Virus record (IMG/VR): IMGVR_UViG_3300044797_000098
Location: 62,001 to 126,000 of that record
DNA: 64,000 nt
Reading direction: 5' to 3' (one strand)
Shown here: positions 18,733 to 39,313 of the stretch, piece by piece
Position numbering within the stretch: the stretch's first letter is position 1
How the letters are laid out: each line of letters begins with the position of its first letter
Translations under genes and position numbers: made by a program
Notes under the pieces: generated by a model
Seen by the model: only the letters and a program-made list of their open reading frames with translations
What the model was told of the DNA's origin: nothing
Databases searched by the model: none

Positions 18733-19272
18733 TTATGATATTAATACTGCATCAATTAATCTTATACGCTCCTGCATACTATCTGTATTTATTTGATAGT
18801 ATTTAATTGAATACATTTCTAATAATAGTTTTAACATAGCATCTATACTGACAACGGCATCCCAATTTAATTGTTCACGAACACCATCATTTTTCAATGT
18901 TGCTTTTGATGGACGAACAAAAAATATGATTGCATCTTTTAGACTATTTATGTATTCCTCGAACTCTGGACGTTTAATTAACTCATTAGTGATTGTGGAG
19001 TGTTGGGCTGAATATGCAACAGAATCCAATAGTGATCTATCTGCAACAAAATCAATTAATTTAGATTCTTCTAATAATTGACGATTGAATACTTCTGCTT
19101 GATAGGAATTAACTATTTTAATATCTGAACGAAGCGAATCGACATTTAATTCATTTTGACTAAGTACCATCCTCGCTACTTCTGTTAGCATAGGAAGATT
19201 ATATTTTTCCGATGTATAGCGAGCAAGAGTCGATTTTCCTGAACTATGTGATCCAATATAATATATTTTCAT
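18733..19272 (-). CDS. AAA_28/NadR-type P-loop nucleotide kinase
   Basis: MKIYYIGSHSSGKSTLA, EVAR, DRSLLD, DGVR. ATG 19272 overlaps the upstream stop (ATGA). Confidence 0.8.
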   Translation of the reverse strand: MKIYYIGSHSSGKSTLARYTSEKYNLPMLTEVARMVLSQNELNVDSLRSDIKIVNSYQAEVFNRQLLEESKLIDFVADRSLLDSVAYSAQHSTITNELIKRPEFEEYINSLKDAIIFFVRPSKATLKNDGVREQLNWDAVVSIDAMLKLLLEMYSIKYYQINTDSMQERIRLIDAVLIS

Positions 19273-19631
19273 AGTATGGATACGAACTTTTCTATATCTG
19301 AAAAACAATCTAATAATGTTTTTTCATCTATGGCCGGCATAAAAAATCTGTAATAATGCGTATCTGTTATTGTATGGTAATAAAAATATGGCATATTCAT
19401 TTCTTCACAAGACTCTGGTATATTCATTTGTTCATCCATATTTTTATGGGCAGTTTGAATATCAATACCTGGTCGCCAGACTACCACTTCAAAACCCCTA
19501 CCAGGAGTACATTTTTTTATCGGTTCACACCAATAATTTTTAAATTTGGTTTTATATATTGTCTTAACTAATTTAACCGAAAACTTATTTAATAAATCCT
19601 CTAACTTTTGAGAATGAATAAATGTATTCAT
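19269..19631 (-). CDS. Hypothetical protein
   Basis: 120-aa ORF with an AGGT RBS. Confidence 0.6.
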   Translation of the reverse strand: MNTFIHSQKLEDLLNKFSVKLVKTIYKTKFKNYWCEPIKKCTPGRGFEVVVWRPGIDIQTAHKNMDEQMNIPESCEEMNMPYFYYHTITDTHYYRFFMPAIDEKTLLDCFSDIEKFVSIL

Positions 19632-19651
19632 CTTTACCTGTCTTTCTAATA

Positions 19652-20320
19652 TTATAGTACTACGAAATCTCTATCAATAAATAATACTAATGTATTCGGA
19701 TCTTTTGCAAATCCAAGTTTTTGTACGATGTTGCCAGTATTTGATGGTGGCGTGACTGTAAATCCGCCTGCAACAACATCCAAATAATATGTAGCAGTCG
19801 TTATTAATCCTGATTGTCCGCCGAGTTCTCCGTAGTATAATACAACTGCTCGATCGATTGCCGGTTTAGATTGAACTACACCAATAACCGGTTGTGATAT
19901 TGGTTCTGTAGCACTGGCTAAATCAACATAATCTGATGAAGTTAAATATACAACATCATTCACATTTACATTTACCGAACAAGTATACATTCCTGAAACA
20001 CTTCCCGATTGTTCGAATGGGTTTCCTGTACCGGTCGTGATACCATTTCGATTTAAAAATCCAGTGAATGTTGGATCGAATGACATTAGATTGACATTAC
20101 TTTGAAATATTTTAATTTGTTTCGTTCTAAACTTATAGTATAATTCACCTTTTATTAAAGATGATTTTATTTCTTCTTCCGATATGCCACGGATTTTCAT
20201 CAAATCTATATATGCGCCAGGAGCAACTGGATTGTTAAATATATTAATCCATTTTATAGATATATTTTGTACTATAAATACAATATCCGTAGGATTGCGC
20301 CGGTATGCAAAAATGTTCAT
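19652..20320 (-). CDS. Putative structural protein with C-terminal capsid-cement/DUF2190-like domain
   Basis: DVVYL....V.LASA....VIGVV...V...GEL...GL...YYL...G.....P...G..VQ.LG.A pattern. Confidence 0.5.
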   Translation of the reverse strand: MNIFAYRRNPTDIVFIVQNISIKWINIFNNPVAPGAYIDLMKIRGISEEEIKSSLIKGELYYKFRTKQIKIFQSNVNLMSFDPTFTGFLNRNGITTGTGNPFEQSGSVSGMYTCSVNVNVNDVVYLTSSDYVDLASATEPISQPVIGVVQSKPAIDRAVVLYYGELGGQSGLITTATYYLDVVAGGFTVTPPSNTGNIVQKLGFAKDPNTLVLFIDRDFVVL

Positions 20321-20340
20321 ATCAATAATATACGAAAAAA

Positions 20341-20511
20341 TTAGCCTATTTGTATTAGTCGTTGGAATTGATCCATTGTCAATTCGACCGAATTGGCTAT
20401 TGTTTCTAATGGCTTATCTTTATTTTTTGCTACTATTGTTATTATGATTTTATTTGGTGATGGAGATTTAGAAACTTCAATATAAGAATGATCGGTGAAT
20501 TGGATTTTCAT
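20341..20511 (-). CDS. Small hypothetical protein (56 aa, not in the ORF track)
   Basis: MKIQFTDHSYIEVSKSPSPNKIIITIVAKNKDKPLETIANSVELTMDQFQRLIQIG* fills the gap directly after map. Confidence 0.6.
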   Translation of the reverse strand: MKIQFTDHSYIEVSKSPSPNKIIITIVAKNKDKPLETIANSVELTMDQFQRLIQIG

Positions 20512-20514
20512 AAT

Positions 20515-21309
20515 TTATTTTCTATCAGTAATTACTTCTATTTTGTCTTCATGTAGATAGACTGTATGTTCGAAGTGAGCGGACATATCTGCCTCGCACC
20601 ATACTGTCCAACCATCTTTATCTGTCCAAGTTTTCGTTGATCCGCTGGTTAACATTGGTTCGACAGCAAGAGTTAAATTTTCTTGCAATCGCACTCCTTC
20701 GTTTTCATTTGCTTTATTTGGTACAAATGGCTGAGCATGAGGAGTATCCCAATTTAAGGAATGCCCACCATATTTAGTTATACATCCATGACCTTTATTT
20801 TTAGCATATTTACTAATAGCATTACCAATACAACCTAATCGTTTTCCAATTTTTATTGCATCAATTCCTGCATACAATGCCTGTTCCGTATTTTTTATTA
20901 AATCTATATGCTGTTGTGATTTTGGTTCCCCATATATTACTGTTATGGCTGAATCAGCAATTGCCTTATTATATGTAGCGCCCAAATCGAAGCTAACAAC
21001 ATCGCCTTCTTTTAACCTATAATCTGATGGCACCCCATGTACTAATTGCTTATTTATACTGATACATACCCCATATGGAAATCCTTTGTATCCACGAAAT
21101 GTTTGTTGGCAACCATGTCTCTCTATATATTCACCAGCCATATTATTTAGTTCGAGCATAGTCATAGTGGTTTTTTCTTTTACCGCATTCTCTAATAATT
21201 GTAAGGCACCGGCAACGACCTTACCAGCGATACGTTGCCGTTCTAGCCAAACATTATCTTGCAAAATTATGAAATCACTAATTGATGATTTATCTTGCAC
21301 GATTCTCAT
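20515..21309 (-). CDS. map: Type I methionine aminopeptidase
   Basis: CISIN..VHGVP, FDLG, ADSA, GH, PH, VEPM, SAHFEHTV; all metal ligands are present. Confidence 0.95.
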   Translation of the reverse strand: MRIVQDKSSISDFIILQDNVWLERQRIAGKVVAGALQLLENAVKEKTTMTMLELNNMAGEYIERHGCQQTFRGYKGFPYGVCISINKQLVHGVPSDYRLKEGDVVSFDLGATYNKAIADSAITVIYGEPKSQQHIDLIKNTEQALYAGIDAIKIGKRLGCIGNAISKYAKNKGHGCITKYGGHSLNWDTPHAQPFVPNKANENEGVRLQENLTLAVEPMLTSGSTKTWTDKDGWTVWCEADMSAHFEHTVYLHEDKIEVITDRK

Positions 21310-21319
21310 AACATCCTTA

Positions 21320-21568
21320 TCAGTTTCTACCTACTGAATTAAACCATGAATGCGGAACATGATCTACTTTTTCATATTCAACACCATCTGCATCCAATGC
21401 AGCTCTTGCTTTACAGCGCATACATTGTATTTTTGTGCCCGGTGTCGAGCCAAAAGTTGGCTGTCCTGTTTCTGGATCGGACCCAAAAAAACATGAGCCA
21501 CCAACTTCGTAACAAGTACATCCACCAACTGTCATTGATTTAACTAGCGCAATAGTATTATCATGCAT
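21320..21568 (-). CDS. Small Cys-rich hypothetical protein
   Basis: CTC...CMRC; operon context. Confidence 0.55.
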   Translation of the reverse strand: MHDNTIALVKSMTVGGCTCYEVGGSCFFGSDPETGQPTFGSTPGTKIQCMRCKARAALDADGVEYEKVDHVPHSWFNSVGRN

Positions 21569-21577
21569 AATTTATGC

Positions 21578-21931
21578 CTATTCGTCTTCCGGCGCTTGTA
21601 CCGAAGTTATACCTTTTTCATCAACAACAACTTTTCCTGTTGGTTGTTCTGATGTTTTCTTTATACCTGAAAACTTTTTCATAACGGTTTCAGTATCTTC
21701 AGTTGAGGTAGCTGTATAATGACGAGTTTCAGTCTTTACCACTGGCTCTTTACCAACCAAGGATAGATCTAACTTTAGTGTTAGACTAACTATGGTTTGA
21801 TCCAATGTTTTTACTATATTTTGGACGTTCTTTAGATCTTCTCGTGATAGTTTTATTGTTTCATTATTAACTGAACTCGACATAAAATTACGAACCACAA
21901 TTAGATTAGCAATATCTTGTAATATTTTCAT
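21578..21931 (-). CDS. Hypothetical protein
   Basis: 117-aa ORF, tightly packed with its neighbours. Confidence 0.6.
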   Translation of the reverse strand: MKILQDIANLIVVRNFMSSSVNNETIKLSREDLKNVQNIVKTLDQTIVSLTLKLDLSLVGKEPVVKTETRHYTATSTEDTETVMKKFSGIKKTSEQPTGKVVVDEKGITSVQAPEDE

Positions 21932-21933
21932 TT

Positions 21934-22173
21934 TTAGCTCTTCCTTGTTATAGCACCGTCTTCATTAAGTAAATCACCATCTGATAGATGATACTTAAGT
22001 GCAAGACGTAAAATTACGTTATTATATGTAGCTTCTGCTGTTTCACTTTGCGAACGAGCCAAATCTCGTTTTGATTTAGCGAGATCGAGTGAGTGTTTAT
22101 CGCTGTCTGTTAGACGTTCAACTACTTCTACATTTGATGGTGTAGCAACCGGTGTATTTTGATCTTCTGGCAT
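21934..22173 (-). CDS. Hypothetical coiled-coil protein
   Basis: Strong AAGGAG RBS; lies downstream of a sigma70-like promoter. Confidence 0.7.
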   Translation of the reverse strand: MPEDQNTPVATPSNVEVVERLTDSDKHSLDLAKSKRDLARSQSETAEATYNNVILRLALKYHLSDGDLLNEDGAITRKS

Positions 22174-22211
22174 TTTTATCTCCTTTGCCTATCAATTAGG
22201 CTATAACTAAC

Positions 22212-22239
22212 AATATATCAACGATTAATTGTTTGTCAA
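22212..22239 (-). promoter_or_regulatory. Sigma70-like promoter
   Basis: TTGACA-N16-TATATT with an extended TG, upstream of 22173. Confidence 0.65.
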
Positions 22240-22257
22240 GGATTTTTATTATTTTTA

Positions 22258-23622
22258 TTATAGGATTTCTGACGCTAATGTTGCAAGCGGTGAGCGCTCG
22301 CCTTTTGTCAGCAATACACTACCACATATATCGTAGCCTTTAAATTTTTCAATGGCATGAATTAGTGCATTATTGGCAGAATCTAACTGCATGTTATCTA
22401 TTTGTTTTAAATCTCCGAGCAATACTATCTTACTGCCTTCTCCTATACGAGTAATCATTGTTTTTAATTCGTGGAGACTACTATTTTGAACCTCGTCAAT
22501 AATAATGAATGCATTAGGTAATGAACGCCCCCTAAGGTAGGATAGAGCCTCCATCTCAATTAATCCCTTCTCCATCATTAATGATAGATATGGATCTACG
22601 CCATCTTTATTATTCTTATTCATTTTGGAGCTCGAGTTTTTTATTAAAAAATTCAAGTTATCTCTGAATGATGCCAAAAACGGATCTAATTTTTCTTGTT
22701 TAGATCCTGGAAGAGTGCCAAGATCTTTCCCTACCGAAACGATTGGTTTCATTATTATTAATTTATCATATCGTTTTTCTTGCGACTCCAAAACGCTATG
22801 CAACCCAGCAGCAAGCGATAGCAATGTTTTTCCAGTACCACTTGGCCCGGCTAATGATACAAGATTAACTGAACTATCTAACAAAAGATCCAATGCGAAG
22901 TTTTGCTCAGAGCTTTTTGGCGACACACCAAAAACATTTTTATGTTTTTTAATTTCTACAATTTCTTTTTTACCAGCACGAAATCTTCCGTACCCAAGCA
23001 AGTCTTCTTTTGATGATTTTAATACGAGTATATCGTTAGCACGCAATTCATTTTTTTCTATAAAAACATCATTAACATCTATGAAATGATTGCCGTAAAA
23101 CTCGTTTGTTTGATCGCTATCTATTTCTAGTTCTCTAACACTGTTATATATTTCATCAGCAGATTTATATCTATCTTTTGTATAATCTTCCGCGGATAGC
23201 CCAAGAGCTTTGGCACGTATGCGTAATGCAATATCTTTACTAATCAATATTACTTTTTCAGTACGATTCAATTTATTTAATTTTATTGCACACGATAGTA
23301 TTCTATTATCACCATATAAAAATGTTCCAAGTGATTTATCTTCCTCGGTATTATGATCTATTTTTAATAGAATATTATTTTCTAATTTTATACCTTTTTC
23401 GATATCCTTATTATTTGGTAATAATCCATCTAGTGTCCTAATAACTGTTCTTGCATTTTTGCCAGTTTCATCAAAAAACTTCTTTAACTTATCTAATTCC
23501 TCTAAAACTGTTATTGGTATAATTACTATATTATCATTAAAACTTTTGAAGCTTAAAGGATCATACACCAACACCGACGTATCAAGTACATAGATTTTTT
23601 TCACTGTTATCTCCGTTTGCAA
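22258..23622 (-). CDS. phoH: PhoH-family ATPase with N-terminal PIN domain
   Basis: PIN motifs VLDTSV, EELD, DNRIL, SKDIALR; Walker A GPSGTGKT; RGRSL, IIDEVQN, TRIGEGSK, GDLKQID. Confidence 0.92.
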   Translation of the reverse strand: MQTEITVKKIYVLDTSVLVYDPLSFKSFNDNIVIIPITVLEELDKLKKFFDETGKNARTVIRTLDGLLPNNKDIEKGIKLENNILLKIDHNTEEDKSLGTFLYGDNRILSCAIKLNKLNRTEKVILISKDIALRIRAKALGLSAEDYTKDRYKSADEIYNSVRELEIDSDQTNEFYGNHFIDVNDVFIEKNELRANDILVLKSSKEDLLGYGRFRAGKKEIVEIKKHKNVFGVSPKSSEQNFALDLLLDSSVNLVSLAGPSGTGKTLLSLAAGLHSVLESQEKRYDKLIIMKPIVSVGKDLGTLPGSKQEKLDPFLASFRDNLNFLIKNSSSKMNKNNKDGVDPYLSLMMEKGLIEMEALSYLRGRSLPNAFIIIDEVQNSSLHELKTMITRIGEGSKIVLLGDLKQIDNMQLDSANNALIHAIEKFKGYDICGSVLLTKGERSPLATLASEIL

Positions 23623-23657
23623 GAAATTATTTATATCGAACTAAATTATATTGATTA

Positions 23658-24026
23658 TTACTCCTTTCTATTATCTTGTTCAAAAACTGTCCAAAAATCA
23701 ATACTCATTTCCATATATAATTTCTTGTTCGGATCTATTTGTGAAGGATCCTTTTTTATTTTATATAGTGGTTTTTTCCACTCTGCAATAAGTTCTTTTT
23801 CAACATAAATCTTTAAACTACCATCTGGAATATTCATGATTGTGATACCATAAAATCCAAGTGATTTTCTCATTTTTATTTTTTCTTCAATAGAAAGAGG
23901 CTCCTCGGATTTGTAGTCTATGCCTACTTCGAGAGCCTCTAAAATAGTTTTAATGAAGCGAGCTTGTTCCTGCGCTTCTATGTTTTTAGTATTTTCGTCT
24001 CGTTTAATTAAGATGGTGTAACGCAT
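23658..24026 (-). CDS. Hypothetical protein
   Basis: About 122 aa; ATG at 24026, or TTG at 24032. Confidence 0.6.
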   Translation of the reverse strand: MRYTILIKRDENTKNIEAQEQARFIKTILEALEVGIDYKSEEPLSIEEKIKMRKSLGFYGITIMNIPDGSLKIYVEKELIAEWKKPLYKIKKDPSQIDPNKKLYMEMSIDFWTVFEQDNRKE

Positions 24027-24067
24027 TCGCAATCTTAATATAATACGAAAAAAATAGTAAATCTAAC

Positions 24068-26569: not shown

Positions 26570-26607
26570 TCCTATTCCTTCTCACATTTAAGATAGTTCT
26601 ATATTAT

Positions 26608-26631
26608 GTTTTCAGCAAGATCGCTGAAAAC
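26608..26631. promoter_or_regulatory. 9-bp inverted repeat between the sigma gene and nrdJ
   Basis: GTTTTCAGC-aagatc-GCTGAAAAC; no U-tract on the coding strand, so an operator or RNA hairpin is more likely than an intrinsic terminator. Confidence 0.4.
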
Positions 26632-26640
26632 TAAAAACTT

Positions 26641-27270
26641 TTATAGTCGGATATTTTTTTTCAAAACATCCAGCGCGCCATCAATCATTTTCATGCAATG
26701 AAAACGTGATAGCTTCATTTTTCTACAAACTTTACTAATTGACATTGGCTTATCGCCATCAACACCGAACACAAGATTTACTAATTTCCTTTGTTCATCA
26801 TTTAAATTTTCCATTGCAACATCTATTACTTTTGTTATTTCTAATAATTCTGTTAATTTATCTGGTGTATTTTTTTCCTCTTTAAAAACTGGCATTTTAG
26901 TTTCTCTGTGTGGAACATTTGCTTTTGCGAACTTTAAAGGATATCTTATCACCGTATGGGTATTTGCTGAACGAACAATCCTTGTTTCTATATATTTATG
27001 AGCCCACCAGAAAAAATTACCTTTATTTGGATTATAGTTATTCATCGCTCTAACTAACATCTCTAACCCTTCCTGATTTAAATCTTCATAGTTAGAAAAT
27101 CCTTTATATTTATTTGTCCTCATAGATATTAAATAATAAAACTTTTTTATACATAATTGTTCGTGTTTTTTGAATGACTGAATATCTTCTTCCTTTTTTG
27201 TTTCCTCGCTTCGATTTTTTAGTTCAATAAACGTTGTCATTAAATCCTGAGCTTCATCGATAGATATCAT
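26641..27270 (-). CDS. Sigma70-family RNA polymerase sigma factor
   Basis: Region 2 YEDLNQEG...A...YNP.KG.F..WA..YI; region 4 L...QR......FG......S...V.....LSR. ATG 27270 is preferred because the track start lies in the -35 box. Confidence 0.88.
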   Translation of the reverse strand: MISIDEAQDLMTTFIELKNRSEETKKEEDIQSFKKHEQLCIKKFYYLISMRTNKYKGFSNYEDLNQEGLEMLVRAMNNYNPNKGNFFWWAHKYIETRIVRSANTHTVIRYPLKFAKANVPHRETKMPVFKEEKNTPDKLTELLEITKVIDVAMENLNDEQRKLVNLVFGVDGDKPMSISKVCRKMKLSRFHCMKMIDGALDVLKKNIRL

Positions 27271-27310
27271 TCTTACCAGCCTTTTGAGCACATTAGTATG
27301 CTCAACAATC

Positions 27311-27339
27311 AATATAAGACACTTGTAAAAAGATGTCAA
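27311..27339 (-). promoter_or_regulatory. Sigma70-like promoter for the phage sigma gene
   Basis: TTGACA-N17-TATATT, with the same CTTGACA...TATATTG context as 22212-22239. Confidence 0.7.
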
Positions 27340-27400
27340 GATATGTTGATCACTATTTTAGGTTTTGTGTAAAAAAGATACTTCGTTAGTGATAGAAAAC

Positions 27401-27598
27401 TTACTTAGAATAGTTATCTTTACTCCAACAATTTCCTGTTAGGACGAAACTTGTTTGTGATATCAAACGCTTAGGCGGAGGACTTATTTTTCCATTTTCT
27501 TTGCATGTGGGACACTCTTGCAATGGATCGTCATGAACTGATTGAACTGCTTCAAACTCTTTATCGCAAGTTTCACAATAATAACAATAAGTTGCCAT
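27401..27598 (-). CDS. FmdB-family zinc-ribbon protein
   Basis: MATY.Y.CETC...FE..Q......L..CPTC......RLIS..SF.L.G..W..D.Y. Confidence 0.85.
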   Translation of the reverse strand: MATYCYYCETCDKEFEAVQSVHDDPLQECPTCKENGKISPPPKRLISQTSFVLTGNCWSKDNYSK

Positions 27599-27843: not shown

Positions 27844-28170
27844 CTATATTAGGAGTATAAAATCATTTGTATGATTTTCTTTTTCAATAATCTTTATTGT
27901 TTTATCATTTATTTCAGTGAATGAAATTATATATCGTTCATTAAAATCTGATTTATCACCTAATTTTTTTATAGCTTTTGCCTGTTGCTTATCTACGCTA
28001 CGAACATAATTAAGTAATTCATTTTTATCACTCATTATGGTGTGGATTATTCGACTATACCTATTGCCTTGTATTGTTCCATTAGTAAAATTAGGATATC
28101 TTTTATCAAAAAAATATTTATCTGCAACTCCATAATAGATTTTATCGGGGTCGATTTCTTTTTCCAGCAT
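27844..28170 (-). CDS. Hypothetical protein
   Basis: 108 aa with a GAGG RBS; overlaps the upstream gene. Confidence 0.55.
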   Translation of the reverse strand: MLEKEIDPDKIYYGVADKYFFDKRYPNFTNGTIQGNRYSRIIHTIMSDKNELLNYVRSVDKQQAKAIKKLGDKSDFNERYIISFTEINDKTIKIIEKENHTNDFILLI

Positions 28171-28470: not shown

Positions 28471-29853
28471 TTATTGTTTATTGTTTATTTTGTCTGAAAT
28501 ATCTTCTGGATCTGTTTTCGTACTACTATCAGTATAAGCATCATTTATTAATGCGCAACACTCCATGTGCTTTTTTAATTTACCACTGGTCAATTCTCCA
28601 CGTCTATTTTTTACCATCTCAACGCTAAAATCAGGGCAATGTTTTTCATTGGATCTTGTATTGATTACAACAATCATATCACAATTATCCGATATCATCG
28701 TACTTCTGCGAAAATCTTTTATTCCAAAATTACCCTCTTTACCACCACCCTTTGGATTCAACTGAACTGCACTTAATACTATAATTTCTTTTGCCCTCGC
28801 TAATTCATGAACCCCTTCGGATATTTGTCCTTGAACTAGCCAATCATCTGTAGCATCTGTATCAACATCCATTAAATTTAAATAATCAATAACAACAACG
28901 TCTGGTTTACCATATTGAAGCGCGTAGTCATCAATCATATTTTCTAATGCTTCTGGTGTTGCTTTTCTTGGTAAATCAATTACGGTAAAATGCTTATTGT
29001 AGTTCTTAATAAATTTAAATGCATTTGCAACACGAGCTTTTTGTTCCTCATCTAATGTTGCGTCTCTGATAGATTTTTGTGGAACCATAGCTATTCTCGC
29101 CATTGCTCTTTGCATATAATCTTCATAATTCATCTCTAATGAGAACAGCAATATATTGGAACCGTTATGAAAATTAGACGTCATTGATAGTTCATTATTG
29201 CCAATCCACATTTGAATAGCAGTATTCATTAGTAATAGTGATTTACCTGAACTAGTTATGCCAGCGAAAATTACCAACTCTCCTGATTTCAATCCTGAAT
29301 TGGCGCGATCTATAAAATCATATCCTGTTTTTACGCCAGCATTATAATTTGGATCTTTTATTTTATTATTATATGTGTTTCTAAAATCATCAGCGTAATC
29401 TTTTAAATTTCCCTTTTTATATGAACCTATCTGATTTACATTCTTTATATTATTCAATACTGTCTGTATATCACTAACACTCTTCTTTAAATCAATCTTA
29501 TCTATCTCACCAATATTTTCTTTTAGATTTAAAATTAGTTTTTCTGAATACCTCTTCTTCAATTTTTCTAAATCGTGCTTATACTCTTTATCATCATAAT
29601 TGAACGCCATTATCCTATCGAATAATTGATCTGTGTGCTCAGCGAATGCTTTATTTTTTGCAGGGTCAATACGCTCTAATATTACACGCTTAGTGGGAAC
29701 GTCTTTATATACACGAATATATTCAATAACCAATTTAGCAAAACGCCAAGCGCTCGGATCAAACAACTTCTCATTGCAATCGTGCGCAAACTCTAATGCG
29801 TATTTACGATTGGTTAGAATTGTTTTTAATATAGATAGATCTAGATCATTCAT
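28471..29853 (-). CDS. dnaB: DnaB-like replicative helicase
   Basis: Walker A GITSSGKS, FSLEM, VIDYL, AVQLN, KNRRG. Confidence 0.9.
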   Translation of the reverse strand: MNDLDLSILKTILTNRKYALEFAHDCNEKLFDPSAWRFAKLVIEYIRVYKDVPTKRVILERIDPAKNKAFAEHTDQLFDRIMAFNYDDKEYKHDLEKLKKRYSEKLILNLKENIGEIDKIDLKKSVSDIQTVLNNIKNVNQIGSYKKGNLKDYADDFRNTYNNKIKDPNYNAGVKTGYDFIDRANSGLKSGELVIFAGITSSGKSLLLMNTAIQMWIGNNELSMTSNFHNGSNILLFSLEMNYEDYMQRAMARIAMVPQKSIRDATLDEEQKARVANAFKFIKNYNKHFTVIDLPRKATPEALENMIDDYALQYGKPDVVVIDYLNLMDVDTDATDDWLVQGQISEGVHELARAKEIIVLSAVQLNPKGGGKEGNFGIKDFRRSTMISDNCDMIVVINTRSNEKHCPDFSVEMVKNRRGELTSGKLKKHMECCALINDAYTDSSTKTDPEDISDKINNKQ

Positions 29854-30188
29854 ATTAGCACCATAAGTTTATTTATTCTTTCCGCATCAATTTTAATTTC
29901 CATAAATGTATCCCAATCTTTATCTCGTAATGTATTCATATAAACATAATATGCCATTAATAATCTAATATCTTGATGCCCATCTAAATCCGATACGGTT
30001 GCAAGATCGCTAAAAAATCCGGCAATTGGTCCAGTTAATCCATAGTATCCATTTTGGGATCTTACACGTTTTATAAACTCTAAACAAAACTGTGTATGTT
30101 CTTCTGTTCCGAACTCATCAGCAAACTCTGGGCGACCTTGTGAGAATGACCAATCAATAAAACTATTTATATGTTGTTCTATACTCAT
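29850..30188 (-). CDS. Hypothetical protein between loader and helicase
   Basis: ATGA overlaps on both sides; ends INKLMVLI. Confidence 0.65.
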   Translation of the reverse strand: MSIEQHINSFIDWSFSQGRPEFADEFGTEEHTQFCLEFIKRVRSQNGYYGLTGPIAGFFSDLATVSDLDGHQDIRLLMAYYVYMNTLRDKDWDTFMEIKIDAERINKLMVLI

Positions 30189-30922: not shown

Positions 30923-31306
30923 TTATTTCTTTTTTACTCCAAATAACATTGATAGCGATGAACCATAACTTGTTGATACATTACCACTTGGCTCATGTGA
31001 TGTTAGTTTTTCTTTTATTTCTTCTAACTCTACCTTATTGAGTTCTGTTTTCAATTCAGCGAGCGTCTTAATGTCATTAAGAGACTTAATTGTTTTTTCA
31101 GCAACCTCGTTGTATTCTTCGTGAATATTTGTTTCGCTGAATGTAAAAAATAAGACATCGTCGAGTGTCTTTTGTATGACGGTTATTTTATTATTTGTTA
31201 GGGATTTTATGGCTGATTTAGTATCGCTCCAAGATATTACTTGCCCGCTGACTTGAACGCCGTGTCTAAAAAATATAGTAATTTGTGAGTTTATTGGAGG
31301 GATCAT
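30923..31306 (-). CDS. Hypothetical protein with Sm/Hfq-like N-terminal motif
   Basis: ITIFFRHGVQVSGQVISWSD resembles the Sm1 motif. Confidence 0.45.
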   Translation of the reverse strand: MIPPINSQITIFFRHGVQVSGQVISWSDTKSAIKSLTNNKITVIQKTLDDVLFFTFSETNIHEEYNEVAEKTIKSLNDIKTLAELKTELNKVELEEIKEKLTSHEPSGNVSTSYGSSLSMLFGVKKK

Positions 31307-31596
31307 ATTAATATCATATACTTTCTCATCTCATCTGCGTAATGCGGATAGTTATTAATAATATGTTGAAAACACACATCCCAATCATATAATATCTCTT
31401 GCGTTATAAACTTAATTACATTTGGAATGGGATTCATCCCCTTACTTTCATATGTTGCAATAAACTTATTCAAGTATCCTGTTGTATATGGAACCCCATG
31501 GTCTTGTAGCTCAATCACTTCAGTAAAATCTGTATCATATAATGTATGATGAATTGAGGGAAGTTTTAAAAAACTTAATTCGTCTTTTATAAACAT
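31303..31596 (-). CDS. Hypothetical protein
   Basis: 97 aa with a GAGGT RBS; ends EMRKYMILI. Confidence 0.65.
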   Translation of the reverse strand: MFIKDELSFLKLPSIHHTLYDTDFTEVIELQDHGVPYTTGYLNKFIATYESKGMNPIPNVIKFITQEILYDWDVCFQHIINNYPHYADEMRKYMILI

Positions 31597-31856
31597 TACC
31601 TCAACCTATTTGCTAAATCTTCTGCATACAACGCGAGCCACCCATTTGTATATAAACACTCGGATACTTGCGAGTCTTGAACTAATTTTTCAACAACTCC
31701 GGGCGGTAAGTGATCTCGCATCAATTCATATAGAAAACTAATCAATTTACTATCACGCTCTATATGACCGCTGGCTTCTCGTAATGTATTGATTTCTTGT
31801 TGTCTATCTATTTTCTTATCGGTTTCACTTGTCCAATGAGCTGGTATATTTGTCAT
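31596..31856 (-). CDS. Hypothetical protein
   Basis: The ATG of MTNIPAHW follows the upstream stop directly. Confidence 0.6.
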   Translation of the reverse strand: MTNIPAHWTSETDKKIDRQQEINTLREASGHIERDSKLISFLYELMRDHLPPGVVEKLVQDSQVSECLYTNGWLALYAEDLANRLR

Positions 31857-31857
31857 T

Positions 31858-32313
31858 TTATTTTCTATTACCAAAATAGCGGTATCCTTGTTTTTCCGCA
31901 ATCTCCACGCAATCATTTAATAAATAACTAAGTGGATTTTTAACTTGATCTGGATACTTACCCTCAAATCTAGAAAACGGCTTTGTTGTTAGTGTTTTGA
32001 ATTCATTATCGTAAGCACCCTCTTCTATTCCACAACATAGGCAAACTCTATATTCATTATGATGATCAGAATAATCATCAAGATATGATCCATTATATTG
32101 TGAGCGCCTACATACTGTATGAGTATGCTGACATTCTTTTCGTAATTGTTCTAATGCCTTGCTAGCTTCGGCTTTTAGAAATGCTTCTTCTTTTTTGGAA
32201 TCGGTTTCGTGTGCGAGTTTTATACAGGATATGTAGTCGTGTCGTAGGGTTGGTGCGTTGTTCATGCTAAGCGTTTTTTCTACATTCCTTAATATCTTGA
32301 TCTGTTCCACCAT
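31858..32313 (-). CDS. Hypothetical protein with C.H...C..C zinc motif
   Basis: CQH...RVCLCCGIEE; start uncertain. Confidence 0.6.
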   Translation of the reverse strand: MVEQIKILRNVEKTLSMNNAPTLRHDYISCIKLAHETDSKKEEAFLKAEASKALEQLRKECQHTHTVCRRSQYNGSYLDDYSDHHNEYRVCLCCGIEEGAYDNEFKTLTTKPFSRFEGKYPDQVKNPLSYLLNDCVEIAEKQGYRYFGNRK

Positions 32314-34192: not shown

Positions 34193-35057
34193 TATAATCC
34201 CTCAAATTAAATTTTGACTGATCTAATATACTATTTTCTTTATAGTTAGAAATATCAGTTTTAAACTGCTCTATTGTTTTAGTTCTATTTTCAATTAAAA
34301 TTTGTGTTTTTGATTCTATTAATTTATACAAATAATTTATTTTTTCATTCATTGTTTTTGATGATATCGGAAATATTTTATGCTTACTATTCATATACTC
34401 ATAAAATTTGCTATTATTTAGCATAAGTTGTCCGGGGCCAGCATCAAAAGATACAAAATCCATTATTAATAGATCTAATAAATCTGCTAAATAAATAGAA
34501 ACTGATACCCCAATATTATTGTAATATACAAAACTTTCAATTATAAGATAATATGAGTCAATTTGATTTTGTATCATTGCATTTAATAATTTTCTACCAG
34601 AAACTAAATTTGGTTGCCCTGTATGTTTTATTATCTTTGCGTTTTCTAATTTAATGTTTGCTATTTCAGTAAGTTTTGATTTTTCTTTTTCTGTTTTAGC
34701 TTTAAGTAAATCTTTTTCTAATTTTAGTTTTATTTTATCTGATTTTACCTGACATGAATCCTCTACGAAGTGAATTTTATTATTGGTCGGATTGTAAATA
34801 TTACAATTTAACGGTTTAATCCAAAAATCCCCCATGGAACGATCGCTTTCTTCGTCATCTTTTGTTTGCATTGCAATTTTATAGTTTAATTGCAACATAT
34901 TTGCGGTTTGTTCTTGTGCGTATGTTGCTAAACTATGACCACGTTCTTTTTTTGCACTATTTTTAATATAGTCTAGAAATTTTTTTTCTTTGCAATGATT
35001 GTCCCAATCATTCTGCAATAAAATTACTATATTTTCTAATATATCTAGATTAATCAT
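34185..35057 (-). CDS. Putative type II restriction endonuclease
   Basis: Overlaps the methyltransferase start; E....RSMGD.W......NP.N.K resembles a PD-(D/E)xK variant. Confidence 0.5.
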   Translation of the reverse strand: MINLDILENIVILLQNDWDNHCKEKKFLDYIKNSAKKERGHSLATYAQEQTANMLQLNYKIAMQTKDDEESDRSMGDFWIKPLNCNIYNPTNNKIHFVEDSCQVKSDKIKLKLEKDLLKAKTEKEKSKLTEIANIKLENAKIIKHTGQPNLVSGRKLLNAMIQNQIDSYYLIIESFVYYNNIGVSVSIYLADLLDLLIMDFVSFDAGPGQLMLNNSKFYEYMNSKHKIFPISSKTMNEKINYLYKLIESKTQILIENRTKTIEQFKTDISNYKENSILDQSKFNLRDYNE

Positions 35058-35099
35058 ATTGCCTTTATATTATTTAAAGTTATGCGTATAATATACAAA

Positions 35100-35681
35100 T
35101 TATTTCACCCTTTCCAATATTTTTAAATCCATTCCAGCCCCAACCAACGCATCCATCAATACCCTATATTCTTCACTCTCCCTAATAAATGCAAGCTCTC
35201 CATAATTATTAATTGGTGCATTGAATGATTTTATAATTGTCATATAATTTGGGGGAATGGGTGTTGAACGATCAACGCTCGCATTTGGTATGAGTTTTAG
35301 AAACTTATACTTATTAACATCTATCGGGTTTGCCAATATTGCAATGCTGGTAATTCTCTTTTGTTTTGCCACAATTATCGTTTGAAAGAACCAGTCTAAA
35401 TAATCTTTGAGGATTTGAGGATCGCTTGACAATTGTTGTGATATTTTTTTTATGTTTTGTATTTCCCAGCTTTTTGAAGGAGCCGTGTGATTGAACTTGA
35501 ATGTGTAATCAACGCCGTAATGGTTTTTGTATAATTTAACCCAATAAGCGATCACATGGACGGGACGCCAGTCTTTTGTTGGAAGGGTTTCAATTTCTGG
35601 GAATTGGCTGAACCATTTTTGGTAAGATTTACTAACCGCATCAGTTAATGATGGCTCAGTTTGTGTTTTATTTAGTTTCAT
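35100..35681 (-). CDS. Hypothetical phage protein
   Basis: 193-aa helical ORF in the replication region. Confidence 0.65.
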   Translation of the reverse strand: MKLNKTQTEPSLTDAVSKSYQKWFSQFPEIETLPTKDWRPVHVIAYWVKLYKNHYGVDYTFKFNHTAPSKSWEIQNIKKISQQLSSDPQILKDYLDWFFQTIIVAKQKRITSIAILANPIDVNKYKFLKLIPNASVDRSTPIPPNYMTIIKSFNAPINNYGELAFIRESEEYRVLMDALVGAGMDLKILERVK

Positions 35682-36574
35682 TTTTTCTCATGTCGTGTTT
35701 TATCTCTGCCATCTTCCCAATTTTTCTTTGCTGAGTACGGTCTTAGATTTTTTAATGACCAACATTTTAAAAAATTAGGATGATCATAACTATTGAATTT
35801 AAGATCCGATTGCGGTTTTATATGATCTAACTGCCAAGTCCAAGTAGAACTATCATTTTCATTCCAGGTTTTAGGATCATATTTTCCATGATTATTTAGG
35901 GTCATCCATACTTTACCATTATGGTCTAAGTTTTCTGACATACTAAATTGCTTTATTATATGTTCCCATAGCTGTTCTGGCGTCCAAGGAAATTTATCTT
36001 TGCAAGATATTTTATTCTTAGACAACCCTTGTTTTTTTAAAATCGAGCGTACTGCCGTAGAAATATCTTTCATACATTTCCACACTGGATCTGTTTTTCT
36101 TTTATTACTTTCATATTTATTTTTGGTCTTATTTATTTTATCTTTATTATTTTTTCTATAATTCTTTTGGTAATCCCATATTTCTTGTTTTTCTTCTTCG
36201 GAAAGAAGAAGATATTCTTTTCGCCATTTCTCGTTCAATCTATCACTGTTCTCTTCACGATATTTTTTATTATATTTTTTTATATTATCAGCGTTTTTCT
36301 TAGAATATTCCTTTTGGTATTCTAATACCTCATCTCTTTTTTCAGCATAACGAATTCTGGATTTTTTTACTAATCTTTCTTTATTATTTAAATAATATAG
36401 ACGGTGTAATTCTTTATGCTTTTCTTTTAATTTTTCTTTGTTATTTTCACTATATAATTTATTATATTGGCTAACACAGATCTTACACTTTGGAAACTTC
36501 TTTTTTAATTGACAATTAGTAAATTGATCTATAGTTTTTTCTTTTGAGCAAAATTTACAAAATATTTGTTCCAT
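35678..36574 (-). CDS. HNH-type (homing-like) endonuclease
   Basis: N-terminal C..C...C..C, K/E-rich helical repeats, WQLDHIKP...CWSL.NLRP....N. Confidence 0.75.
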   Translation of the reverse strand: MEQIFCKFCSKEKTIDQFTNCQLKKKFPKCKICVSQYNKLYSENNKEKLKEKHKELHRLYYLNNKERLVKKSRIRYAEKRDEVLEYQKEYSKKNADNIKKYNKKYREENSDRLNEKWRKEYLLLSEEEKQEIWDYQKNYRKNNKDKINKTKNKYESNKRKTDPVWKCMKDISTAVRSILKKQGLSKNKISCKDKFPWTPEQLWEHIIKQFSMSENLDHNGKVWMTLNNHGKYDPKTWNENDSSTWTWQLDHIKPQSDLKFNSYDHPNFLKCWSLKNLRPYSAKKNWEDGRDKTRHEKK

Positions 36575-36636
36575 AGCAAGTTCTCCGAATACAACTAAAT
36601 ATACGGATCATGTATAATTATCACAACCAAATCTAA

Positions 36637-38106
36637 TTATTTATCAATAAATTCTTTTGGCATTTTTATAACGAACTCTGGTTCGGTCTCATAAATACTT
36701 TTTCTAATTAGCGAATGTTTTTTCAGAAACTTTATGTCGTCCATCGTTTCGACTATTGCAACATAAGGCTTATTTTTACCATCCCTCAAAACTCTTCCGA
36801 TCCTTTGCAATGTTTTTACACTACTTTTACCTGACCCAGCTAATACCAACGCACTCAATGTTTTTACATCGATTCCAATGTCGTATATCATACTTGCCAC
36901 GATACATTTAGATTTACCGCTGAGCAGGTTTTCTTTCACCTGTGCTCGCTTCTTCGTTGTATCTTTACCATTGAGGAACTCGGTGTCAATACCTTTATTT
37001 TCAAATAATTTTAACAATGTTTTTCCGTGGGCCAGGACTTTGAAAAGAACTAAAACTTGATACCCTTTATTAATTAGTTTTTCTGCTTCTGACACGAGTA
37101 TATTATTTCTGTATTCATTATTTACTACATGATCACTATATACCGTTTGATATGGTGTATCATATTTAGCATAGCCTTTTATATACACGAACTTGATCAT
37201 TGGTTTTGCAAGGATACCCCGCTTAATTAATTCTGATGCTTTTACTTCGTGTATATTATTGCCCAGTATTCCCGTTAGTAATAAATCTGCGCCATCATCT
37301 CTTTTTGGTGTTCCACTATACGAAAACAATCTTTCTGGCTGTATAACTTTATATATACTTCTAATTGTTTTAGCCCCAGCGATATGGCATTCGTCTAAAT
37401 GAACTATCTTCGCATTTTTCATACAATCAATTATTTTTTTCGTATTACTCTCGTCGAACTTCTCATCCGAACTTATATCATCTAATAAAATATCTTTTGG
37501 TTTCAATCCTAATGCTTTACCCAATGTCCAGACTGATGCTATTGTTATATTACCTATTTGGCATATACCATCACCAACGATACCGATCTCTTGATCAAAT
37601 AGTAATGAAAAGAATGAATGAAATTGATGTAGCAACTCTTTGGAAATTACAAGCATCAATGTAGGCTTACCGAATTGTGCTGTTATCAATGCTGCCGTTA
37701 GACTCTTACCTGAACCCGTTGCGTGCTTATATATTGCACGATCTTTATCCAACGCATAATTTACTGCATCCAACTGATAGTCATATGGAACTAAATCTAA
37801 TTTTTTTAGATTATGAGATATATCTATACTTTTTGTTGGAATGATTGGTAATTTTTGATTTATGATTTCTAATTGTTTATTATTCTTTATATAAAAATCA
37901 TTTACATAATTAACTAATCCTGAATAGAACTCTTGTTTTTTATTGAGGAGATATTCTTTTCCATCCCAATGATGACGTTTAAATGCTGGACTGAACTCTG
38001 CTCCCTCATATTTAAACGATAGGTGATTATGTAATTGTTTTAGAAAAACTAAATCATCTTCTTCTATGATTTTAGAAAACTTCTCTTTGACTAGGAGCTT
38101 GGTCAT
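36637..38106 (-). CDS. Superfamily 2 helicase (UvsW-like)
   Basis: YQ, ATGSGKS, DECH, SGTP, GID, QRIGR. Confidence 0.9.
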   Translation of the reverse strand: MTKLLVKEKFSKIIEEDDLVFLKQLHNHLSFKYEGAEFSPAFKRHHWDGKEYLLNKKQEFYSGLVNYVNDFYIKNNKQLEIINQKLPIIPTKSIDISHNLKKLDLVPYDYQLDAVNYALDKDRAIYKHATGSGKSLTAALITAQFGKPTLMLVISKELLHQFHSFFSLLFDQEIGIVGDGICQIGNITIASVWTLGKALGLKPKDILLDDISSDEKFDESNTKKIIDCMKNAKIVHLDECHIAGAKTIRSIYKVIQPERLFSYSGTPKRDDGADLLLTGILGNNIHEVKASELIKRGILAKPMIKFVYIKGYAKYDTPYQTVYSDHVVNNEYRNNILVSEAEKLINKGYQVLVLFKVLAHGKTLLKLFENKGIDTEFLNGKDTTKKRAQVKENLLSGKSKCIVASMIYDIGIDVKTLSALVLAGSGKSSVKTLQRIGRVLRDGKNKPYVAIVETMDDIKFLKKHSLIRKSIYETEPEFVIKMPKEFIDK

Positions 38107-38316
38107 TTACCACTTCTCGTATCCTTCTGATATTCTCTTACTCAATTTCTTATTAAATTCAATTCTTTCTAATTCTTTTCGTCTTCGATTGCAAAAATCA
38201 CATTGACAATCGCATCCGTCTTTATGTTGTTCCCCACCAACACAATAATGCTGATTATCATTTTTCGATACTAATTTTTCATTAGGATTTACTTTTATTT
38301 TATATTTCTTGCTCAT
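38107..38316 (-). CDS. Small Cys-rich hypothetical protein
   Basis: H..GCDCQCDFC. Confidence 0.55.
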   Translation of the reverse strand: MSKKYKIKVNPNEKLVSKNDNQHYCVGGEQHKDGCDCQCDFCNRRRKELERIEFNKKLSKRISEGYEKW

Positions 38317-38329
38317 TTATGAAATTTAA

Positions 38330-38626
38330 TCAGATTTCTTTTTTATATATTTTCTTGAACTTAAACTTAGCAGCCCTAGCTTCACGCTCTATCCTATGTT
38401 CTTCCGTTTCTACTATTGGTTCAGGTGGCACATAAGGCTTTGTTTTATCGGTTAATGCATAATATATTGATATCGGTATGGTTATAGGAAAGAATAAAAC
38501 ATACAATCCTACTCCAACAAGCACTAATCTACCAAATGAACTATATAAATCATGTCTATCATCTACCCATTCCCACATTTTATCTATCGGATTTTTCATT
38601 TTTTGCCAATTTGATTTGTTTTTCAA
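38330..38626 (-). CDS. Small membrane protein
   Basis: Hydrophobic stretch LVLVGVGLYVLFFPITIPISIYYAL. Confidence 0.55.
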   Translation of the reverse strand: MKNKSNWQKMKNPIDKMWEWVDDRHDLYSSFGRLVLVGVGLYVLFFPITIPISIYYALTDKTKPYVPPEPIVETEEHRIEREARAAKFKFKKIYKKEI

Positions 38627-38894
38627 ATATCTTTTCTATTTCATCTAGTTCCGCTATAAAATAGGCAGAAAAATCTCCTGAATAACACTCTACTTCATAA
38701 ACTGGTTTATTTTTCTTTTGCGCAATTAATGCTAATCTAAATCCATTTTGTACTTCATTTTCAGCTCTAACTTTTCCAGATATGGTATAATGATCGGCTG
38801 ATTTAATCAATATGGTATCTATATAATCAAACTCATAATTATTATATAATAATTGCATTAAATTATTTAACTTTTTGGATCGTTTTATTTTCAT
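38580..38894 (-). CDS. Hypothetical protein
   Basis: 104 aa, ATGA-coupled to the upstream gene. Confidence 0.55.
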   Translation of the reverse strand: MKIKRSKKLNNLMQLLYNNYEFDYIDTILIKSADHYTISGKVRAENEVQNGFRLALIAQKKNKPVYEVECYSGDFSAYFIAELDEIEKIFEKQIKLAKNEKSDR

Positions 38895-39313
38895 TTCAAT
38901 ACCAACATAGCTTCTATTTTTTCAATGCTCTGTTTATCATCCCATCTATTATTAAACATTTTGACCAAATCTTCGCATCTCTTTCTTTGATCAATAAATG
39001 CCTCAATTATCCTCATTAGATCTTTCTTTTCTTTTGATTTTTTATCGTCATCTATTCTAATGGCGATATGACACTTTGGACAATTGAATACCTTTTCTGT
39101 TGGTGGGGATACGTAATTAACGCCAGAACTACCGCTAACTAAATACTGCCCCGATAGTGTTGGACTAGGGATATATCCTAATACCCCTACATGCGATTGA
39201 GCAGCTACCGAACTAAGTGGGCTATAAGCACCACGAGCACCACCAAGATCACCGCTATATTCTTTTGCTGATTCTGTTTCGATTAACTTATATGAACATT
39301 GAGGACAAAACAT
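38891..39313 (-). CDS. Zinc-ribbon protein with a low-complexity insert
   Basis: CPQC and CPKC are separated by a ~70-aa G/S-rich segment. Confidence 0.6.
   Translation of the reverse strand: MFCPQCSYKLIETESAKEYSGDLGGARGAYSPLSSVAAQSHVGVLGYIPSPTLSGQYLVSGSSGVNYVSPPTEKVFNCPKCHIAIRIDDDKKSKEKKDLMRIIEAFIDQRKRCEDLVKMFNNRWDDKQSIEKIEAMLVLK

Follow-up and report, generated by a model that had tools for sequence, protein, structure and literature searches.

A C-terminal tail shared by otherwise unrelated small proteins of a peat jumbo phage, a candidate address helix

We analysed a 64,000-nucleotide stretch of DNA (the window), bases 62,001-126,000 of a single 406,470-bp virus contig (IMG/VR record IMGVR_UViG_3300044797_000098), in which several small proteins end in a similar sequence of lysine followed by hydrophobic residues. 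Across the whole contig, about one gene in six (~16%) carries the same 12-residue C-terminal tail, [DE](-10)-x-Φ(-8)-[ED](-7)-K(-6)-[YL](-5)-L(-4)-Φ(-3)-L(-2)-[ILVMQK](-1)-stop, where Φ denotes a hydrophobic residue; a typical ending is …D-I-E-K-Y-L-L-L-I-stop. The tail stands on bodies without detectable kinship, is under selection as a peptide, and is predicted by structure models to form an amphipathic C-terminal helix, a self-contained protein module of about 12 residues. We see an even chance that this helix is a common address or docking element whose free C-terminus is recognised by one shared partner.

The contig originates from a peat metagenome, has a guanine-cytosine (GC) content of 33% and is estimated to be 95% complete (CheckV); partial relatives occur in peat and rhizosphere samples. 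Its gene products include DnaB, IstB/DnaC-like, UvsW-like and PhoH-like proteins, ribonucleotide reductase, a TubZ-like tubulin and a GH25 endolysin. GenBank phages contain no close relative of this jumbo phage, the best helicase identity being only ~24%. Gene calling with our own AT-trained Markov-model caller yielded 495 genes, 459 of them on the minus strand. The called starts are approximate, which is harmless to the tail analyses because every one of these depends on stop codons only.

A first clue came from 68 junctions at which stop and start codons overlap as ATGA, since about 27 of the upstream genes end x-E-[KR]-[YL]-x-Φ-L-x. The last 12 residues of all proteins were then scored with a position weight matrix (PWM), with thresholds of >=15 for a strict and >=5.5 for a wide set. 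Among the 495 called C-termini, 60 reached the strict and 70 the wide threshold, compared with 1 and ~6-14, respectively, of 109,416 internal windows. Enrichment over shuffled termini, the check proposed when the pattern was first read from the letters of the window, is therefore clear genome-wide: the 60-70 hits stand against a mean of 0.17 and a maximum of 2 in 200 shuffles. In non-coding plus-strand frames the tail was found on 0 of 1,226 open reading frames (ORFs) of at least 40 aa. A matrix built from a single protein family (family A, below) still recovered 21 C-termini of other proteins against 0.05 expected, so the enrichment is not circular. Uncalled ORFs on the coding strand add 13 more, bringing the total to ~83 tagged genes.

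Conservation within the 60 strict tails is highest at Leu(-2), which is invariant (60/60). Upstream of it lie L, I, M or V at -3, Leu at -4 (41/60), Tyr (31) or Leu (24) at -5, Lys (51) or Arg (6) at -6, Glu or Asp at -7, I, L, V or M at -8 and Glu or Asp at -10 (48/60); the final residue varies (I20, V11, Q8, L7, M6, K5, T1). Carriers are small (median 98 aa), making up 66 of the 226 proteins of 55-140 aa, or nearly one third. They are also clustered, with 60 of the 70 tagged genes lying at 240-380 kb and only three clear members (ending at 31303, 29850 and 38891) in the window.

Tail-like sequences also occur outside the matrix hits. Family E-like paralogs bear a shorter variant, ...GY-x-LLTEETMLLL, which lacks Lys at -6 and falls below matrix detection:
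genome 261,160-261,405, short variant
genome 260,894-261,163, short variant
L037:2988-3233, short variant in a relative
In addition, a 68-aa gene ending VEDVEKYMLLR was skipped by the gene caller. Because of these short variants and this skipped gene, the count of tagged genes is an underestimate. A tail-like sequence, KKEDIEKLRLLA (internal score 19.0), stands at the N-terminus of a 97-aa called gene ending at genome 281,428 and may represent a start miscall or a fusion remnant of a lost upstream tagged gene.

To the tail are joined bodies of many kinds. After removal of the last 16 residues, BLAST divided the 70 proteins into 51 clusters, and grouping by eye and alignment gave about 7 families plus some 30 singletons, including:
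Family A, 18 paralogs including the window gene ending at 31303, alpha/beta fold
Family B, 8-10 members in a tandem array at 363-366 kb, ending ERHYKLLLLQ
Family C, 5 members, MORN-like beta-hairpin repeats
Family E, 6-8 members, ending GY-x-LLT-x-EQ-x-EK...
Zinc-ribbon carriers, several CxxC proteins

When family profiles stripped of their last 13 residues were compared by hhalign, the probability was <=2% in all 21 pairs. When the tails were left on, most pairs aligned best over just the last 10-13 residues, the exception being families A and P, which align over 53 columns (60%). Pfam and PHROGs hold no family for any of the 70 tagged proteins.

The AlphaFold2 model of family A, built from 42 sequences, reached a predicted local distance difference test score (pLDDT) of 89.7 and a predicted template-modelling score (pTM) of 0.82. 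It comprises three beta-strands followed by four helices, with the tail predicted as the last helix (residues 84-96, pLDDT ~90). The tail is also the most conserved segment of the family (2.92 versus 1.84 bits per column), with L96, Y93 and K92 among the top four positions. For this fold, nothing above noise (best Z 5.3) came from Foldseek against PDB, VIA-align wide or BFVD, and the Atlas feature search gave no usable match for the proteins ending at 31303 and 29850. The family C model was poor (pLDDT 50.5) and was used for secondary structure only, indicating beta-hairpins followed by a terminal helix. The family C alignment shows repeats of the form DGPAxEY-x-NG-x-K-x-WY-x-NGK-x-HR, which we compared with the tandem ~23-residue MORN repeat of G-x-x-x-Y-x-N-G-x-x-H-G type; Pfam gave no match at E <= 0.01, and tblastn matched repeat proteins of phages PA5oct and Atu_ph07 and of a Celeribacter phage.

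The motif is under purifying selection as a peptide, as three features of its coding DNA indicate. Information is distributed over codon positions 1, 2 and 3 as 0.72, 1.01 and 0.43 bits, has a three-base period and falls to zero right after the stop codon. Five different codons are used for the invariant Leu(-2) (TTG 26, TTA 23, CTA 8, CTG 2, CTT 1). Between positions -12 and -4, synonymous codons are shared among unrelated tagged genes at random (observed/expected 0.92-1.2). Tail DNA is ~60-70% alike, and the longest DNA words common to unrelated tails are typically 6-8 nt. In the last three codons, synonymous sharing rises above expectation (ratios 1.4-1.8), and the final base is A in 44 of 60 genes. 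The commonest codons are AAA at -6 (37/60) and ATA at -1 (17/60), both of which are also typical AT-rich codons.

Junctions behind the 60 strict tagged genes comprise 37 without overlap, 3 with a one-base overlap and 20 with an ATGA overlap, so that one third form ATGA-coupled pairs and the other two thirds do not; the stop codons are TGA (30), TAA (19) and TAG (11). Tagged genes are enriched both for ATGA overlaps (odds ratio 4.0, p = 2e-5) and for TGA stops (odds ratio 3.2). Shine-Dalgarno (SD)-like words occur upstream of 36-47% of ordinary starts and at 36% of untagged ATGA junctions, versus 8% of ATGA junctions behind tagged genes (p = 0.012 against untagged), the same 8% as in random coding DNA. 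At short-spacer junctions behind tagged genes, an SD follows the stop codon in 48%. A run of Leu, Ile and Val codons leaves no room for a GGAGG Shine-Dalgarno sequence; the tail thus cannot encode one, and the next gene must therefore re-initiate at an overlapping ATGA or place its SD just past the stop. Re-initiation at ATGA is easy because the last tail codon is usually NNA. The ATGA overlap is a consequence of the tail and not its cause, because over half of the tagged genes lack this overlap and the tail DNA holds no SD.

The sequence-only reading had quoted six C-termini from the window, all of which we recovered at the stops named; they are listed here together with the helicase gene downstream of one of them:
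31303..31596, minus strand, 97 aa, family A; tail YADEMRKYMILI encoded at 31306-31341; ATGA at 31303-31306 overlaps the next start
29850..30188, minus strand, 112 aa, singleton body; tail DAERINKLMVLI encoded at 29853-29888; ATGA overlap at both gene ends
38891..39313, minus strand, 140 aa, two CxxC zinc-ribbon motifs and a Gly/Ser-rich linker; tail SIEKIEAMLVLK encoded at 38894-38929; ATGA at 38891-38894
27844..28170, minus strand, 108 aa, ends NHTNDFILLI; TAG stop, no overlap
19269..19631, minus strand, 120 aa, ends SDIEKFVSIL; ATGA at 19269-19272
7202..7567, minus strand, 121 aa, ends NLKKLLVK; TAA stop
28471..29853, minus strand, DnaB-like helicase gene whose ATG lies inside the ATGA ending the 29850 gene; DnaB_C domain in a relative's ortholog and in the window batch

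The ATGA stop/start overlap that had been reported for the four best cases is present in each (29850-29853, 31303-31306, 38891-38894 and 19269-19272), and at 19269 it requires the next gene to begin at the in-frame ATG and not at an upstream TTG. The helicase gene exemplifies a downstream gene with no SD in the preceding tail-coding DNA. No significant Pfam or PHROG match was found for the six window proteins. The description of these proteins as otherwise dissimilar holds among the quoted genes themselves, but the 31303 gene sits in an 18-member paralog family. As bearers of the tag, the six fared unequally: two are strong, one is moderate, one is degenerate, one is borderline and one is not a member.

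Orthologs on two IMG/VR contigs retain the tails with conservative replacements, even at 51% overall identity. The 31303 protein (PWM 25.1, strong) aligns with 17 paralogs and ~25 metagenomic homologs, nearly all ending DIEKYLxLx; its own MRKYMILI corresponds to MRKYIMLI and MRKYLLLL in orthologs. The 29850 gene (PWM 22.3, strong) is placed between the IstB/DnaC-like gene and the DnaB-like helicase gene; its ortholog in relative L013 is 94% identical and ends ERINKIMVMA, and the L014 locus contains no match. The 38891 gene (PWM 5.9, moderate) comes after the GH25 endolysin gene (39313-40413), and its orthologs, 51% and 73% identical overall, end SIERLEALLILK and TIEKIEAMLILK and score 10.8 and 13.7. 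Two genes downstream of both the endolysin and the 38891 gene, a small protein with a clear hydrophobic transmembrane stretch (38330-38626, minus strand) is a possible holin-like partner in a lysis cluster.

The 27844 protein scores -8.5, and judging from its L013 ortholog (65% identical, ending EEHINKFLLLI, score 14.5) it is a degenerate or decayed member; the L014 ortholog ends NDYLLLI. The 19269 protein (PWM -7.3, borderline) retains the DIEK-plus-hydrophobic register with Ile in place of Leu at -2, and its single diverged ortholog (70% identical) ends SDIEKLALIQ and scores 3.4. The protein ending at 7202 (PWM -20.3) is not a member, as it has neither the acidic residues nor the K(-6)/L(-2) register.

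Beyond these orthologs, a profile search with family A returned ~30 metagenomic homologs down to ~22% identity, all but one of which end DIEKYL-x-L-x-stop; among the matches listed (~25), nearly all stop exactly one residue past the invariant Leu. On a 175-kb relative with 40% GC, four genes of family A and three MORN genes (87, 173 and 196 aa) all end in ...IYGKENLQKFLLLI or a closely similar sequence, and in these MORN proteins the tail stays constant while the repeat number ranges from 1 to ~7. In PA5oct, a Pseudomonas phage, and Atu_ph07, an Agrobacterium phage, the MORN-type proteins are without the tail, so the tail is a clade-specific add-on. Two more relatives of the tag-rich region have tailed genes, three of them with bodies unmatched by BLAST in the protein set called here; one of the three has a counterpart in this genome, the 68-aa tagged gene skipped by the caller.

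Family A has no match in GenBank phages, and family B has no relative in the viral contig collection searched. An IMG/VR search with a DNA pattern gave 6 chance matches, none at an ORF end; the pattern fits one gene in the phage's own genome and is therefore uninformative on absence elsewhere. Our literature search found no description of a C-terminal motif shared among phage ORFans, and a paper on a boreal jumbophage had no bearing on the question. Tandem family A genes of three distant relatives are followed directly by, or lie close to, an Alliinase_C/aminotransferase-like gene:
L024:10584-11600, Alliinase_C/aminotransferase-like gene
L025:1063-2079, Alliinase_C/aminotransferase-like gene
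L026:7615-8586, Alliinase_C/aminotransferase-like gene
This synteny may hint at a working partner of family A. The phage's own family A array is followed by a 340-aa gene (L009:9930-10952).

Comparison with relative L037 at the DNA level revealed how the arrays of small tagged genes change. Joined by ATGA, these arrays differ between the two genomes by whole units, namely an 89-aa paralog present here and 72-aa and 70-aa genes present in L037. At the first indel, one tail provides the match on the upstream side (41/51 nt) and the sequence after the other tail the match on the downstream side (56/60 nt), placing the crossover in the last two codons, where the flanking tails are 17/24 identical. 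At the second, repeated sequence (microhomology) lies at two gene starts and not in tails. Tagged ORFans turn over fast between close relatives. The clade keeps the tail, whereas its bodies diverge and duplicate, give way to others, or are gained and lost as whole gene units. The portable gene-end cassette suggested by the sequence-only reading survives in a weak sense only. Turnover does proceed by gain and loss of exact ATGA-to-ATGA gene units, one of them flanked by similar tail DNA. Conservation of the tail, however, is not at the DNA level, and tail DNA is at most a helper in this process and not the motif's reason.

Three explanations that dispense with a function of the peptide in its own right, or with independent bodies, can be weighed against these data. 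That the ending is a by-product of the downstream gene's needs, its ribosome-binding site and ATGA constraining the last 20-30 nt, would agree with the excess of ATGA overlaps and TGA stops in tagged genes and with the synonym sharing and terminal A of the last codons. The same genes, however, mostly lack an overlap (37/60), end half the time in TAA or TAG (30/60), concentrate their information at codon positions 1 and 2 with a three-base period, share codons at random from -12 to -4 and carry SD-like words at the 8% background, and the motif is absent from all 1,226 ORFs of other frames or strand; the proposal that ribosome-binding site plus ATGA could explain everything is thus largely refuted already, and we find it hardly credible. 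Slim, too, is the prospect that a recombination cassette is primary, with tail DNA and ATGA forming a boundary for gene insertion, deletion or swapping by homologous or homeologous recombination that preserves coupling, and with the peptide incidental. The exact unit differences from L037, the crossover within similar tails and the rapid turnover of tagged ORFans all speak for it, whereas the randomised synonymous sites, the short shared words and the start-codon microhomology of the second indel do not, and a DNA role leaves unexplained the amino-acid conservation across metagenomes down to ~22% body identity. The cassette effect is best seen as a side-effect that aids family expansion. Plain paralogy, in which all carriers form one fast-evolving family whose tail is the last recognisable part, is improbable. 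Some carriers do form large families in tandem arrays (A, B, E and C, with 18, 8-10, 6-8 and 5 members), small phage proteins diverge fast, and profile methods can miss kinship; yet MORN-like hairpin repeats, CxxC zinc ribbons and an alpha/beta fold cannot be one domain, body-only hhalign comparisons were uniformly negative, and MORN relatives elsewhere lack the tail.

A weightier alternative, which we consider unlikely without dismissing it, is a portable capping or dimerisation helix with no common partner, which would stabilise small beta-rich bodies or drive self-association and would have been inherited by duplication and domain shuffling from one ancestral small gene, conserved as a self-sufficient folding unit. 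AlphaFold2 confidently continues the family A fold into a terminal helix and predicts a helix in family C; the hydrophobic residues are spaced i, i+3, i+4, i+7 and E(-10) may form an i-to-i+4 salt bridge with K(-6), both of which are common to helices in general; many bodies look beta-rich, making a covering helix plausible; and because families A and P align beyond the tail, some of the sharing is by descent. A structural helix, on the other hand, needs neither a fixed end one residue past Leu in ~80 proteins nor a solvent-side K(-6) and acidic residues at -10 and -7 across unrelated bodies, and it does not account for an identical tail on MORN proteins of one to ~7 repeats when the MORN proteins of other phages are tailless.

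It is these features that favour the common address helix. The sequence-only reading had proposed a shared terminal signal, and the data fit one at the protein level: conservation is of amino acids, strictly C-terminal, on unrelated bodies and kept in relatives. The charged, presumably solvent-facing positions K(-6), D/E(-10) and also E/D(-7) are as conserved across families as the hydrophobic ones, a pattern to be expected of recognition by a common partner and not of packing on different bodies. A common reader is suggested because the tail has a fixed end one residue past Leu, conserves these charges, outlasts its bodies and recurs on new ones. The body would supply an individual target or activity, and the tail would send all carriers to the same machine. 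Of the possible read-outs, each unlikely taken singly, the foremost would be a C-terminal degron through which a host AAA+ protease clears early or accessory proteins at a set time; a signal for loading into the virion or some other phage assembly is somewhat less likely, and docking on another host or phage hub is on a par with it.

The genomic context is compatible with an early or accessory role. Intergenic regions contain, on the coding strand, 19 copies of a conserved sigma70-like promoter form (TTGACAA, a GC-rich 17-nt spacer and TA(C/T)ATT). Eight of these fall within 360-406 kb, and one copy stands immediately upstream of the family B array. Positions include:
genome 365,996, sigma70-like promoter
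genome 402,447, sigma70-like promoter
genome 405,047, sigma70-like promoter
window ~22,239, sigma70-like promoter
window 27,339, sigma70-like promoter (approximate position)
In addition, CTTGACAA was found in 9 intergenic regions against 1.6 expected. The tagged genes, concentrated at 240-380 kb, lie downstream of the promoter cluster, which fits an early/accessory region. A sigma-factor-like protein was recognised by eye at 26641-27339; since the phage has its own sigma-like factor, it probably uses the host RNA polymerase.

Several observations weigh against an address helix. The phage genome encodes no ClpP, Lon (Lon_C), Tsp-like protease (Peptidase_S41), PDZ (PDZ_2), Hsp70, GroEL (Cpn60) or beta-clamp (DNA_pol3_beta_3) domain that could serve as its own reader. 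The family A tail is modelled as a well-ordered last helix, not a floppy appendage, and may pack against the body, out of reach of a partner. In 13 of 60 tails the last residue is K or Q, unlike known carboxylate-reading systems, and the runs that hold the sequence are all DNA contig sets, with no RNA runs among them. A wider scheme is quite conceivable, though we rate it short of an even chance: the phage clade would possess its own sorting system, in which the address helix marks ~80 fast-evolving ORFan effectors (~16% of genes) for one machine, be it for loading into virions and co-injection or for scheduled destruction once the early phase is over. New effectors would become functional once recombined in front of an existing tail and ATGA junction.

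The tail belongs with a kind of element already known, the short C-terminal targeting and degradation peptides. The ssrA tag (...YALAA, ClpXP) has Tyr at -5 and Glu at -7, as in the phage tail. A transfer-messenger RNA (tmRNA) search of the phage genome found none, hence there is no phage ssrA-like tag for comparison. With AAA+ C-degrons in general the tail shares a short, transferable peptide at the extreme C-terminus, hydrophobic penultimate residues and occurrence on many unrelated proteins. The Lon C-degron class x-[L/I]-[L/I/V]-H, found on ~2-9% of ORFs in various bacteria, is autonomous and has an invariant terminal His after two hydrophobic residues (PMC11986505). None of the 60 tails ends in His, though -2 and -3 are hydrophobic, and none ends Ala-Ala as in the ssrA-like ClpXP C-motif 1, which closes with small non-polar residues (L-A-A-COOH or close variants), -2 being Leu in 60/60. 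The phage tail further differs from AAA+ C-degrons in that it is predicted to be helical and not unstructured, has a nearly invariant Lys (51/60, plus 6 Arg) at -6, and occurs on a much higher share of genes (~16%), all carriers being phage ORFans. A PDZ/Tsp-type ligand, whose strictly hydrophobic last residue is read along with the free carboxylate by a PDZ-bearing protein of the same compartment, is likewise a poor match, given the 13 of 60 tails ending in K or Q and the lack of PDZ_2 and Peptidase_S41 in the phage. Inspection by eye revealed no obvious signal peptide at the start of the tagged sequences listed.

Capsid loading, as the sequence-only reading had also suggested, brings encapsulin cargo to mind, in which unrelated proteins share a C-terminal peptide of ~10 residues that docks inside an HK97-fold shell, the fold of tailed-phage capsids. 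The resemblance lies in a ~10-residue C-terminal peptide on unrelated proteins. Encapsulin peptides are Gly/Ser-rich with a basic end, e.g. ...GSLxIGSLK..., and their cargo genes neighbour the shell gene, whereas the phage tail is acidic, Leu-rich and devoid of Gly, and the tagged genes at 240-380 kb lie apart from the presumed structural block at 126-220 kb. The T4 capsid targeting sequence is N-terminal and is cut off by the prohead protease. This short phage peptide sends otherwise unrelated small internal proteins into the prohead for co-injection (reviews include PMC3012670). The tail described here differs in being C-terminal and in having no evident protease site.

As a gene-boundary element, the tail invites comparison with the PeSL of T4-type phages, reportedly described as 'mobile regulatory cassettes' by Arbiol, Comeau and Krisch in 2010. 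PeSL and lambdoid boundary sequences are non-coding DNA/RNA elements (promoter plus stem-loop) conserved as nucleotides. Both they and the tail recur at gene boundaries; the known elements accompany the modular gain, loss and reshuffling of small accessory genes, and around the tail unit-wise ATGA-to-ATGA indels are seen, but the tail is coding and conserved as protein, not DNA: nucleotide conservation of the PeSL type is missing, as the sharing ratio of 0.92-1.2 at -12 to -4 and the shared words of 6-8 nt show. Of the two unit indels examined, one had tail-DNA microhomology at the crossover and one start-codon microhomology. Poxvirus ankyrin/PRANC (F-box-like) proteins offer a parallel in logic, with many target-binding bodies, paralogous or unrelated, and one constant C-terminal element plugging into a single host machine; PRANC spans ~40-50 residues and its partner is Skp1. 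The variable body with a constant C-terminal docking motif is common to both, while kingdom and motif differ and the phage element is 12 residues long and a candidate for docking only. The beta-clamp motif (QL[SD]LF) does not fit, since the tail has no Gln at the equivalent position, Phe is rare and the phage lacks DNA_pol3_beta_3. As leads only, the tail also resembles NRLLLTG, a model peptide for DnaK, ...LRVVK, the XB motif of SspB, and D-I-P-x-F-L (cf. D-I-E-K-Y-L) in the C-terminal peptide of FtsZ.

Three aspects are new: such a tail is present on ~16% of the genes of one phage, it is helical and rich in acidic residues, Lys and Leu, and it is tied to junction architecture and to gene turnover by whole units. 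Small ORFans for which no function can be detected abound in jumbo phages; here nearly one third of the 55-140-aa proteins are linked by one conserved C-terminal element and can therefore be studied as one class. Should the tail be an address tag, a 14-residue peptide could act as bait for the shared partner, the motif would provide a sequence rule for spotting accessory or effector genes in related metagenomic phages, and it might yield a transferable tag that steers protein fate in the host. It would also be a case of a coding constraint shaping gene junctions, with a hydrophobic tail that leaves no SD room leading to ATGA coupling. A clade-wide sorting system, if real, would be a phage counterpart of secretion and organelle targeting signals and a 'plug-and-play' site for accessory-gene innovation. 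Even as a structural helix only, a 12-residue module shuffled among unrelated folds would be unusual.

Other features of the genome were recorded alongside the tail. The window holds a tubulin/FtsZ-family gene (41740-43152, minus strand) with 80-94% identity in both relatives, the ortholog of one relative matching Pfam Tubulin and, weakly, TubZ-like_C. A plus-strand block in this minus-strand genome (window 8971-17184, plus strand) comprises four genes of 428, 1519, 278 and 499 aa, has a raised GC of 44.6% at 12-16 kb, and is followed by a Gly-rich overlapping ORF at 17123-17506. One unspecified protein of the scanned batch gave a very strong Big_3_5 Ig-like match (5e-149).

Elsewhere, an 11-kb island of 47% GC (genome 37,673-48,617; L029:17673-20000 plus L001:1-8617) stands out from the 33% GC genome. 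Only two ORFs of at least 200 aa lie in the 9 kb inspected, the AT-trained caller called no genes, and no tandem repeats, tRNA or Rfam match were found in it; it could be foreign DNA, decayed DNA or an assembly chimera. The phage has just two tRNA genes, Lys(UUU) at L028:1488-1562 (minus strand) and Ile(UAU) at L009:12830-12903 (minus strand). Four TnpB-like genes, with a Cas12f1-like TNB domain and in two cases OrfB_IS605, were present in the first large-protein batch, including L028:9-1190 (minus strand), together with two patatin-like phospholipases and two Eco57I-type methylases.

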